Source of the DNA: Dimorphilus gyrociliatus
Lineage: Eukaryota; Animalia; Annelida
Length of the DNA stretch: 64,000 nt
NCBI GenBank assembly: GCA_904063045.1
Contig: CAJFCJ010000005.1
Coordinates: 1,255,988-1,319,987 of the forward strand
Direction of reading: 5' to 3'
Part shown: one piece after another, positions 5,447-10,884 of the stretch
How positions within the stretch are numbered: the first letter of the stretch is position 1
Layout: the number at the start of each line of letters is the position of its first letter
Made by a program: the position numbers and the translations under genes
The notes under the pieces: model-generated
Told to the model about the DNA's origin: nothing
Seen by the model: only the letters and a program-made list of their open reading frames with translations
The model's database searches: none

Positions 5447-5785
5447 TCAGTTTGACCCATACATACAGCTAGACGCTGAAAACGAATCGAAAGAAGAAAC
5501 AGACGTCGTTGAGTTGCGATATTTTGCTGCAGTCATGCAGAACGTGCAAATAGGCCTGGAAGAATCAGCTTCTGACGAGCAACAGGGTTGTTCTATGCCG
5601 GCCACTAAAACTGCCTGAAGGTGAGAGATGTAACTGGTTGCAAGCCTCAAGATTTCTATTTTAGATAATTTTCGGTCGGCAGGTTCGGTAGGAATGTGAC
5701 ATCGAAGAACATCAAAAGCCGAATTTACACTATGTGTCCTGTCTCTTTCTCTTGCATTGGCGGTTGTTTTCGGTGGGTTTGGCAT
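5447..5785 (-). CDS. TCF15: Paraxis/scleraxis-family bHLH transcription factor
   Basis: [16 protein letters not shown]...[26 protein letters not shown] is the diagnostic paraxis/scleraxis bHLH. Single coding exon of 112 aa. Confidence 0.93.
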
Positions 5786-7694: not shown

Positions 7695-8470
7695 TTATAA
7701 ACAAGAACAAACAGTTTTATGTTTAGTTAATAAAGACATTCTTGAAAAAGTTTTTGAGCATGAACATGAATATTTCTTGGCATTAGAGTGTGTTTGAATA
7801 TGAGCTCTCAAATTTGAACGGTCAGCAAAAGCTCTCCCACATGTACTGCAACTAAATGGCTTTTCTCCTGTATGAGTCCGTATATGTCCTTGTAATAACC
7901 AAGGCCTTGAAAAAGCTTTTCCGCAAAATGGACATTTACAAGGAAGAGTATGAGTTCGAACATGCATTTTTAAGGCCCCAACAGTGGAATAGCTCTTTTT
8001 GCATTGATTGCATTTATATTCCGGTTTTCCAAAATAAGCTTGACAATGAAATTGCTTGTGCTTAAAAAGTCCATTGTAAGTGGCATAAACCTTGTTACAA
8101 GCATCGCAAGAATACTTCGGTGAGACTTGTATTGGTGATTCTAGCAGAGAAGGAGTTCGACGATAAAGTGGTTGCGACAATTGGTGATATGGATTCGGAA
8201 AAAAACTAAATCTTGATATATTCCAGCAATTAGTCCATATTTCTTGTGGTTTTGCTATGTTTTCGAAATTTGGTTTAGAAGAAGTCATTTCACATTTTGG
8301 ATCTAAAATATAGTTATTGAATATTATCCAAGTTATAGACGTAAGTACAAAAGCTACTTACAACATACTCTAGTTTTGCTATCCTCATCTGTGGAAACGA
8401 CATCAATATATTCTTCATCTTCTGCAATGTCTTCATTAAGGATCCTTTTAATTAGAAACGCTTCCGACAT
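7695..8470 (-). CDS. snail: Snail-family C2H2 zinc-finger repressor (Snail/Slug/escargot type, 5 fingers)
   Basis: Exon 1 8470-8362 ([11 protein letters not shown]...), 59-nt gtaagt..ttag intron, exon 2 8302-7695. Fingers include [40 protein letters not shown] and [14 protein letters not shown]. Finger 1 (KHKQFHC) is Snail/escargot-like, not scratch-like. Confidence 0.96.
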
Positions 8471-9970
8471 ATCGCCAGAACAATCTGATAACTTCAAGAA
8501 AATTTATTCATTTAAAGCAAAACTAGGTAACCAATCAGTAGTAAGATTCCATACATAACCAACCAATCAGCTTCAAGAACACCCTGCGGCCCACCTGTTA
8601 CATAATCTTCTCATCTCTTTTCCGAGTCAATGTTTGTGCTTTTTAGATCAGATTTTTTTGGGGGACTTTAAATTCCCTTTCCCGTCATTTTTACTTGTTA
8701 AAGGTAACTATTTCACATGAGCTACTTATTATCAAACATGCGCTTAATTTTCTCTTTGACTTAACTAAATCTTTCCTTAGCAGACCCTGTATCCCTTTGA
8801 AGTCAGACATAATAAATTCTTTTGATAGACACTTGATAAGCAGCGACAGTTGCATACGACAACCTTTAAAAGTGCGCACGTGCCTGAAAGTCCCACGCCT
8901 TTCACATTCGCAAGTGATTCATTAGGTAGGGTTTCCAAAAAGTCATGGAACTGTTCTCTTTGCTTCTTAATGCTATTACCATTCACTCCGTGTGAAAATC
9001 TTCTTTTTTACTTTCTTAGTGGCGACTATCATACAAAATTTTACGATTTATATGAGACAATTATATAATCAGAAATGTAACATGGTTAACACTTGCCGTA
9101 AAAAATTGGTAATGCCATCTTGGGTCACGCTGAGCCGTATAATTGCTTACAACACAATTACTGCTAATTTTAAAAGTCATTGTAAACTTCTATTATTTCA
9201 TTTTAATTTATAACTGCTATAGGAAACATCTAAAGTATTACCGGTAACGTATAACCGAAATATTTTCATTAACAGGGTAAACATATTGTATAAATACATG
9301 AAAAGGTCGTCAGAAGTATAAGCTCGTGACAGCTTTACATGATGCTCAGCCACAGCTGACAAACTTCAAAGACAACAGGTGCGGCCATCTTAAATGCCAA
9401 TTAAACGTTTGCTCTTTGATCTATTTATATTTTGCACGAGCATTTGTGGACGTTTATTCTTAGAGAACGTATAAATATTTATGAACAATAAATCGTATTA
9501 TATATAATTTGGCAACACATTGATATAAATACAGCAACACAAATATTTTTAATTTAGAAATTTTACTGTACATTTCGCGAGTTTTGATGAGCAGACTATT
9601 ATCAATAGTGTTATAAAAAACTATACTGCTTACATCTCAGAAATTCAGTACGATAGTTATACAAAAACTGTCAGCATTATAGTTTCCCTTATTGTTATAA
9701 TTGTTTTAACGAAACTAAGTACACTCTAAAAACAATGTTTATGACATTGATAATGATTGTATGTAACTGCGAATTGTTCGATTTTCATCGCCATTCAAAT
9801 TTCTGCAATTCCGCGTCAATAATGTTCGAATCAACTACCAGTTTTCATTGCGTTACCAAAAAATATTTTACCGTTGATCTGCAATACCATTCTCGTCGGC
9901 ACCTTTTTTTATAAACCCTGATCGTATTATATTTCGTTTGATCAATTATATTCTATAATAATCATTCTAC

Positions 9971-10884
9971 ATGGATATACTGAATAAGACATTTCCGCTC
10001 CATTATGCAAGTATGATGGGCGATGATCGGTGCTTGTCGGCGTTACTTAGACGCGGTGAAAATGGCGTCTATATTGAAGATGACATTAATGGATGGACTC
10101 CTGTTCACTATGCGTCTTTCTATGGACAGGTAATTTTAGATTAATAAATTTAGTTGAGTGAAAAGTCTCTGAAAGATTTATAATAAATATTCAATTTACA
10201 GTTAGAATGTCTTATGATACTTCATAGTCATGGAACACATCACGACAGCCCAACAATTAGACTTAGACAAACTCCTGCTCATATGGCTTCTCTCTCTGGC
10301 AAGATCTCCTGCCTAAAGTGGCTCCTGGGTCTGGGAATAGCAATTAACAGAGAGGTTAGATAAAGAGAAAAGATCAAATTGAAGCTTATCACCTGAGATA
10401 AGAGATTGATTTCTGATACGTGCTTGGAGAAATGAACATTTTAAATACTATTAAAATTCTTACAAGTGTGTCTCAATAGTTTAGAATGTTTTTTTTTCAT
10501 AGGACTACCTGAGTGAAACTGTCCTTCATAAAGTTGCTCGAGGAGGAAATACAGAGTGCGCCATGTTTTTAATTTCTCAAGGAGCAGATAGATCGTACGT
10601 ATTTCTGCATTATTATTTTTTTTCTTTGAATTTCATAGAGAAATCTTAATAGATTGCGTAATAGCGCTGGATTGACACCTGCAGAGTTAGCTGCAAACAT
10701 GAACCACCAGGAATGTTTTATGGTCTTGGACCAATGTGACACTGATGTTAACGATATATATATGGAGAGAGATTTTCAATCTCGGAAAAGAAAGAAGTAT
10801 ACTGATTTCTTGTACACAGGTTTTAATGAATTTATCAAAAGGTCAAAAATAGATCTCCCATCTGACAGTGAGTTGTTCGTTTAA
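9971..10884 (+). CDS. Ankyrin-repeat protein, ANKRD10/ANKRD37-like
   Basis: Exons 9971-10129, 10202-10354, 10503-10594, 10653-10884 join in frame. Ankyrin motifs GWTPVHYA, QTPAHMA, ETVLHKVA, GLTPAELA, then an RKRKK basic (NLS-like) tail. Confidence 0.85.

Follow-up and report, generated by a model that had tools for sequence, protein, structure and literature searches.

On the minus strand of the 64-kb stretch of contig CAJFCJ010000005.1 analyzed here (the window) lies a two-exon gene encoding a short zinc finger protein of the Snail family, with the first exon carrying a degenerate SNAG domain followed by a conserved acidic motif. Exons 1 and 2 joined give a predicted protein of 238 amino acids, the second exon starting at 8302 in frame with a 197-amino-acid zinc finger open reading frame (ORF) at 7695..8288 from the ORF list. 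According to the initial annotation the ORF track had missed exon 1, and both the exon and the peptide read from it are confirmed by translation of the reverse complement, by splice phase and by the orthologous exons described below. The exon 1 donor reads TGTT/GTAAGT (the slash marking the splice site), and the encoded peptide comprises, in this order, motif 1, an acidic linker, motif 2 and six more residues.

An orthologous exon sits upstream of the zinc finger exon in related loci, which places exon 1 beyond chance, and four further loci agree with the window in this exon, in the context of the start codon, in intron phase and in promoter boxes. At L001 and L002 (two samples) the N-terminus reads MSDGFLIKRIL and is followed by a 60-nt phase-1 intron, and at L003 and L004 (two samples) it reads MSESFLIKRLL ... 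DEIIDVVSTED ahead of a phase-1 GTAGGT donor, this locus carrying P0004, the nearest relative of Dimorphilus protein P0003. An exhaustive profile search added P0138, a 43-amino-acid ORF reading MSEAFLIRRIL ... DEFIDVVSTDD with a phase-1 donor, which from its size and position is probably the ORF immediately upstream of P0001. The public models of the orthologues P0001–P0004 (hereafter, with the window gene, the short Snails) all begin inside exon 2, having been made by intron-blind ORF calling. The sequence of intron 1 is not conserved in an alignment of the window, L001 and L004 (alignment A1), and its phase is identical in L001; the 10-nt start-codon context ATATGTCGGA is invariant in the same alignment. 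The putative promoter contains two CCAAT boxes in reverse orientation, reading GATTGG (8568-8563 and 8536-8531), and a conserved block, TAAATGAATA, at 8514-8505, and a Dimorphilus paralogue locus (L005) has two GATTGG boxes and TATAAG upstream of its ATG in the layout found in the window. As read from the DNA, 8362..8470 is the true first coding exon of the gene. Sample SRR23372229 holds two distinct short-Snail genes, L001 (P0002 type) and L004 (P0004 type), and either the paralogue occurs in two copies in one species or two dinophilid species are mixed in this sample.

Table 1. Features of the short Snail gene and its predicted protein (positions in the window)
Feature	Position	Strand	Description
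Putative core promoter	8501..8568	(-)	Blocks invariant in alignment A1, 35-98 nt upstream of the ATG; function presumed
Exon 1	8362..8470	(-)	Coding from the ATG at 8470; 36 codons plus 1 nt; phase-1 donor
Codons 1-4, M-S-E-A	8459..8470	(-)	Register of SNAG Met1-Pro2-Arg3-Ser4
Motif 1, FLIKRIL, codons 5-11	8438..8458	(-)	Regular-expression match; SNAG remnant F-L-I-K-R extended by I-L to eh1-type FxIxxIL
Variable acidic linker, codons 12-18	8417..8437	(-)	pN 0.31-0.54
Motif 2, codons 19-30	8381..8416	(-)	Acidic run, [ILV]DV[VT] core, then Ser/Thr and acidic residues
Intron 1	8303..8361	(-)	59 nt, phase 1, GTAAGT...TTTTAG
Exon 2	7695..8302	(-)	Stop codon included; short pre-finger region and five Snail-type C2H2 fingers
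Zinc finger DNA-binding region	7698..8114	(-)	RPWLLQGH signature; Pfam and sequence comparison

The pattern of substitution in exon 1 points to selection at the level of the peptide. Between the window and L001, non-synonymous (pN) and synonymous (pS) change amounts to pN 0 and pS 0.91 in the FLIKRIL island, with five synonymous and zero non-synonymous changes, to pN 0 and pS 0.64 in the EYIDVVS island, and to pN 0.31 and pS 0.75 in the acidic linker. Over all comparisons pN ranges from 0 to 0.13 in the two islands versus 0.31 to 0.54 in the linker, with pS being saturated. The islands, FLI[KR]R[IL]L and [YFI]IDVVS[TV][DE], are under strong purifying selection, and since pN is 0 where pS is high, it is two peptide motifs and not a DNA element that are being kept. 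A conserved non-coding element was ruled out on the grounds that synonymous sites are saturated yet the motif codons are intact. Matches to an eh1-type pattern and to [ILV]DV[VT] co-occur in 0.0085% of composition-preserving shuffles of the exon 1 peptide.

With the two exons used as separate search queries, exon 2 matched Pfam zf-C2H2 at 3.8e-25 in four stretches and yielded 2262 relatives in a word-indexed protein search, the best named ones being Snail, SNAI2 or escargot and none of them Scratch. The Snail family is marked by a C-terminal array of four to six C2H2 fingers with the signature SRPWLLQGH in finger 3, and by its finger array, its named relatives and its place in the tree below the protein belongs to it. 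The closest named species is Dimorphilus gyrociliatus, with P0003 at 66% and P0006 (DgyrCDS13005) at 62% identity. In common with canonical SNAI1 and SNAI2 the protein has five C-terminal C2H2 fingers, the RPWLLQGH sequence, 61–78% identity over the finger region and an N-terminal F-L-[IV]-[KR]-[KR] in the same register, whereas it differs from them in having Ser and Glu/Asp for Pro2 and Arg3, an altered finger 5 and a pre-finger region of only ~100 amino acids that lacks the SLUG box. Neither PxDLS nor PLKKR is present before the zinc fingers in the predicted protein, in keeping with the earlier statement that no PxDLS-type CtBP motif is visible there. Fingers 1–4 have canonical C2H2 geometry; finger 5 (window 7698-7770 (-)) reads YSCSCSKTF or YSCSCLKTF in the window and P0001–P0004, thus with C-x1-C spacing where other Snails have C-x2-C, a shared one-residue deletion between the cysteines that may have disabled or altered the last finger.

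Maximum-likelihood analysis of the finger region unites the window with P0001 and P0002 at a support of 98/86; Dimorphilus P0003 and P0004 come next, and the short-Snail clade so formed (100/99) stands on a long stem of 0.55 changes per column. Its sister (87/78) is the Dimorphilus Snail P0006, which looks normal and has a branch of 0.045. By its tree position and long stem, the gene in the window is a fast-evolving, lineage-restricted Snail paralogue. P0006 resembles it in its two-exon layout, promoter boxes and degenerate SNAG and in its acidic motif, which reads FIDVVST and lies 15 residues from the start, and is unlike it in its MQKIIVKS start, in a separate FRIADIL in exon 2, in a normal finger 5 and in its short branch. 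A further pre-finger island, W-x3-W-N-[IVL]-S-R, is conserved within exon 2 (alignment A3). In the form [EF]W-x3-W-N-[IVL]-S-R (window 8200-8225 (-)) this third island is found in all short paralogues, with P0006 having a Y-x-F-W-N-I-P-R version, and we know of no motif that it matches.

The first residues of the protein bear on its ability to engage LSD1. Among the Snail matches listed, canonical SNAG reads MPRSFL[VI]KK. In the window and all three orthologues Pro2 is replaced by Ser, and in all four sequences Arg3, the mimic of histone H3 Arg2, is replaced by Glu or Asp, codons 1–4 of the orthologues reading MSE[AS] or MSDG; the change of Pro2 to Ser and of Arg3 to Glu that had been read from the window alone thus recurs, as a replacement of both residues, in every orthologue. 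The SNAG body S/A-F-L-[VI]-[KR]-[KR] (positions 4–9) is retained, as A-F-L-I-K-R in the window. A Met-Ser-Glu start is expected, from the specificities of MetAP and NatA, to lose its Met and to be N-acetylated, which would block insertion in the manner of the H3 tail. Mature SNAIL depends critically on its Pro1 to engage LSD1, and its R2A mutant is only weakly active and cripples stimulation of the LSD1-HDAC1-CoREST deacetylase complex (PMC13316430), and in GFI1 the P2A mutation abolishes both LSD1 binding and repression (PMC5896174). Given the replacement of Pro2 and Arg3 and these published mutant data, we can safely infer that the short Snail paralogue has lost LSD1 binding. Loss of SNAG is in itself not exceptional, at least 11 independent losses of SNAG-1 having been counted in the Snail superfamily (Kerner 2009, PMC2688512).

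Motif 1 fits the eh1 core F-x-[IV]-x-x-[IL]-[LIM], reading FLIKRIL in the window and FLIKRIL, FLIRRIL or FLIKRLL in the orthologues, so that the fit to FxIxxIL proposed at the outset holds and is conserved. The strict F.I..IL pattern appears in 0.06% of composition-matched shuffles, the motif is a conserved island in a variable disordered region, as its low pN against that of the linker indicates, and all four orthologues retain the [IL]-L behind the basic pair. In P0006 the MQKIIVKS start occupies the same register without the Phe or the IL, and FRIADIL is found at the beginning of exon 2; in the short paralogues the N-terminus has the FLIKRIL-type sequence, and nothing eh1-like occurs where P0006 has FRIADIL. 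This distribution of eh1 between the paralogues appears complementary and favours the eh1 reading. An eh1 function of the Groucho type is, in our view, plausible for motif 1, and we assign it tentatively. Motif 1 was also considered as a nuclear-export or Sin3-interaction helix and rejected by eye, as the patterns do not fit.

In motif 2, I-D-V-V-S is invariant in 4/4 aligned sequences (three of the short paralogue and Dimorphilus P0006), and all five sequences keep the S-[TV]-[DE]-[DE] tail. The motif was initially likened, as EEYIDVV, to the WDR5-binding motif (WBM). The IDVV does fit the WBM core and is conserved, but WDR5 is not the sole and probably not the best reading, the sequence fitting a SUMO-interacting motif (SIM) at least as well and SUMO seeming somewhat more likely as a partner than WDR5. 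As a SIM, I-D-V-V would pair as a beta strand with SUMO, aided by the acidic flank and by CK2-type phosphorylation of the Ser/Thr residues in S-T-D-E-D, and would anchor the protein at SUMOylated co-repressors or nuclear bodies. An acidic run, [VIL]x[VIL][VILM] and then a Ser/Thr/acidic tail make a textbook SIM and match the ELM pattern, a regular expression finding the core [VIL]-x-[VIL]-[VIL] with acidic and Ser/Thr flanks; the hydrophobic residue before the core and the conserved S-[TV]-[DE]-[DE] tail suit a SIM as well. Patterns of this kind are degenerate, however, and a single SIM binds SUMO weakly. The best Protein Data Bank (PDB) match of the exon 1 profile is EYIDLVSSDDE of ZNF451, identical to the window at 9/11 positions with a nonsignificant E of 1.7, a segment that on the strength of reviews we take to be a SIM. 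Tandem SIMs have been described at the N-terminus of ZNF451 (PMC9316396), whose tandem-SIM region is the nearest among solved structures, and the validated SIMs of SIMC1 are FIDL and VIDL (PMC9708086). The window peptide thus shares E-Y-I-D-[LV]-V-S-[ST]-D-[DE]-[ED] nearly identically with ZNF451 and the h-I-D-h core with SIMC1, but it is present in a single copy and not in tandem, in an unrelated protein. We regard a SIM as a credible candidate for motif 2, with real doubt attached.

As a WBM in the manner of MYC box IIIb and RbBP5, motif 2 would fit into the WBM cleft of WDR5 and so connect the protein with chromatin marked by WDR5, and this we hold to be unlikely. The WBM consensus is [LIV]-D-V-[VT], with RbBP5 having EEVDVT (PMC13649712) and MYC having IDVV (PMC10279693). 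In E-E-Y-I-D-V-V the [LIV]-D-V-[VT] core follows acidic residues with one non-acidic residue between, the core is identical to that of MYC, the acidic run followed by [IV]-D-V-[VT]-S recalls RbBP5 and MYC, and I-D-V-V-S is invariant in both paralogue groups. On the other hand, a bulky hydrophobic Tyr, Phe or Ile separates the acidic run from the core, at a place taken by Glu in MYC and RbBP5, the motif sits in an unrelated protein, the four-residue core arises by chance in 1.1% of peptide shuffles, WDR5 is mainly a co-activator scaffold and would be an odd partner for a Snail repressor, and the conserved Ser/Thr-acidic tail is better explained by a SIM. Similar acidic-hydrophobic motifs occur in a crab Snail, which has EDEIDVT before the fingers, as a WBM reading would welcome, and in a gastropod Snail, which has an acidic run with LIVVDE; the motif may be recurrent in protostome Snails.

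We read exon 1, tentatively, as the bipartite, two-motif N-terminus of a dinophilid-type Snail paralogue, with motif 1 acting on Groucho and motif 2 on a second partner. This reading sets out from the observed exon, splice phase, conservation, loss of SNAG residues, motif fits and distribution, and extends to a presumed loss of LSD1 binding, N-acetylation and choice of partners. The N-terminus would be a disordered acidic stretch that bears two short linear motifs as a module. Motif 1 would descend from SNAG and, without Pro2 and Arg3, would be unable to enter the LSD1 substrate pocket as an H3 tail mimic, and F-L-I-[KR]-R with the added [IL]-L would make an amphipathic eh1-type FxIxxIL peptide that docks on the WD40 domain of Groucho/TLE. 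Motif 2 (an acidic run, [YFI]IDVVS[TV] and again acidic residues) would recruit the second partner, with SUMO or SUMOylated co-repressors somewhat likelier than WDR5, and the zinc fingers would bind E-box-type sites as in other Snails. The initial annotation suggested that this Snail may have exchanged LSD1/CoREST for Groucho and possibly WDR5; of that proposal the loss of the LSD1 hook is well founded on Pro2/Arg3 and the published mutants, Groucho is plausible and has a precedent, and WDR5 is one of two comparable options.

Several points weigh against the two-partner reading. The gene model was built from DNA sequence, and the partners are assigned from motif fits. F-L-I-K-R is inherited from SNAG (FL[VI][KR][KR]), which accounts for five of the seven positions and leaves only the IL as new, so that the exact match to eh1 says less than it seems to; moreover, a loose eh1 regular expression matches 36/136 Snail pre-finger regions, and because of this the pattern fit alone means little. 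Typical eh1 motifs prefer a small Ser or Thr at position 2 and polar or acidic residues at positions 4–5. Motif 1 has Leu at position 2 and Lys-Arg at 4–5, whereas the eh1-like motifs found here in other Snail-like proteins (FSIDNII, FRIADIL, FLISNLL and FKIATLL) show Ser, Arg or Lys as the second residue, with positions 4–5 mostly polar or acidic. For motif 2, the ZNF451 match with its E of 1.7 falls short of significance.

Motif 1 could also be a mere conserved remnant of SNAG, keeping a SNAG function that is independent of Pro2 and Arg3 and is exerted through another partner or through weak surface contacts with LSD1, with no part for Groucho. F-L-[IV]-[KR]-[KR] is indeed the conserved SNAG body, P0006 has I-I-V-K-S in the same register and no eh1 form there, and SNAG has also been reported to act via Ajuba LIM proteins (cited in PMC2688512). 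We think this improbable in view of the [IL]-L that is kept in all four orthologues with only synonymous change, of the complementary distribution of eh1 between the paralogues, and of the P2A and R2A mutations that cripple SNAG function. That the protein starts elsewhere, at an unseen upstream exon with a canonical SNAG or at the exon 2 ATG (8288) with exon 1 as an untranslated leader, is very improbable, a point for it being that public models begin inside exon 2, for which intron-blind ORF calling accounts, and it is opposed by codon-level selection of the kind expected of a coding exon, by an ATG context and a phase-1 donor conserved in all loci, by CCAAT and TATA-like boxes directly upstream of the 8470 ATG, by an exon 2 ATG that is not conserved and by the finding of no SNAG-like peptide in six frames of the whole 64-kb window, on which ground a canonical SNAG exon elsewhere in the window was rejected.

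The bipartite N-terminus that we favor appears narrowly distributed. At E <= 0.001, exhaustive HMMER searching of 1.84 billion representatives with the four-sequence exon 1 profile yielded four proteins, which apart from P0139 are exon 1 ORFs or fragments of the short-Snail clade. This 104-amino-acid predicted protein, the sole profile match outside the Snail clade, has D-E-W-I-D-V-V-[ST] in three tandem copies, preceded by LIP[DE][EK]. In the library searched, proteins are clustered at 50% identity with one representative each, and P0006 was not among the matches; full-length Snails with this N-terminus could be hidden behind such representatives. Word search with the exon 1 ORF gave no candidate, short ORFs sharing too few words, and with the P0006 pre-finger region it matched only P0006 itself. 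Provisionally, the exon 1 N-terminus would thus be restricted to relatives of Dimorphilus (dinophilid-type annelids).

The claim in the initial annotation that such a co-repressor switch is unknown in Snail proteins does not stand. Copley (2005) found the best eh1 match among C2H2 zinc finger proteins in the N-terminal motif of the Snail-like CES-1, which binds the Groucho orthologue UNC-37 in the two-hybrid map of the worm interactome, with the Snail-related fly protein CG15269 ranking close behind (PMC1310626). Kerner 2009 classes CES-1 as a scratch sequence (PMC2688512). Going by its published description, C. elegans CES-1 (Snail/Scratch-like) is akin to the window protein as a zinc finger repressor of the Snail superfamily with an N-terminal eh1-type motif, and differs in belonging to another lineage and in having no reported acidic IDVV motif. 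A full-text literature search on Snail, eh1 and Groucho found no paper on the subject besides Copley 2005. The eh1 motif is therefore already known in the Snail superfamily from CES-1.

Eh1-like motifs were seen in other Snail-like proteins as well. In one Snail-like clade (100/100 tree support) a canonical eh1 core of [VI][ST]F or VPF followed by SIDNI[IM] lies 35–60 residues before the first finger; this FSIDNII/FSIDNIM clade comprises a SNAI2-like protein of the bryozoan Watersipora subatra (P0125) together with P0058, P0063, P0078, P0098, P0107, P0108 and P0110. Snails of bdelloid rotifers, Adineta and Rotaria among them (P0068, P0105, P0117, P0041 and P0100), carry RKSFLIS[NS]LL 20–45 residues from the annotated start, and in the rotifer RKSFLISNLL a former SNAG body seems to have become an internal motif of eh1 type. 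SNAG and eh1, both of which contain [SA]-F-[LS]-[IV], could be mutational neighbours, so that an LSD1 hook may have been swapped repeatedly for a Groucho hook in Spiralia, with the dinophilid switch coupled to a MYC-like IDVV that gives a link to WDR5 or SUMO; we offer this broader scenario as speculation with little likelihood. Candidates for such a swap are the dinophilid short Snails with their N-terminal FLIKRIL and the rotifer Snails with their internal RKSFLISNLL, the bryozoan and Dimorphilus Snails carrying separate eh1 motifs.

Two neighboring genes may be mentioned. A multi-exon ankyrin-repeat gene at window 9735-10884 (+) begins ~1.3 kb from the ATG of the Snail paralogue in head-to-head orientation, and therefore leaves scant room for another first exon upstream. 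The P0001 contig has an ankyrin-repeat gene in the same divergent arrangement, which suggests conserved synteny and possibly a shared bidirectional control region. Some 1.9 kb downstream of the Snail paralogue and on the same strand, a 112-amino-acid single-exon ORF (window 5447-5785 (-)) contains a bHLH domain (Pfam HLH, 8.7e-21), the basic-helix region of which resembles, by eye, the Scleraxis/Paraxis/Twist group; if so, two genes for mesoderm-type transcription factors would be neighbors.

Snail proteins are central to mesoderm formation and to epithelial-mesenchymal transition (EMT), and their repression is usually ascribed to SNAG-LSD1/CoREST in vertebrates or to CtBP and Ebi in flies. 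The eh1-like motifs in bryozoans and rotifers, together with CES-1 and UNC-37, suggest that proteins of the Snail family may rely on Groucho more often in protostomes than the literature reflects. As a motif-level argument in non-model animals, our findings will be of interest mainly to specialists in evolutionary developmental biology (evo-devo) and transcription factor evolution. If true, a repeated swap coupled to IDVV would amount to an undescribed co-factor logic for a core regulator of EMT and mesoderm, and a lineage whose two Snail paralogues both lack the LSD1 hook but carry motifs of the eh1 and IDVV types would offer a natural experiment in the exchange of co-repressors on a conserved DNA-binding scaffold.

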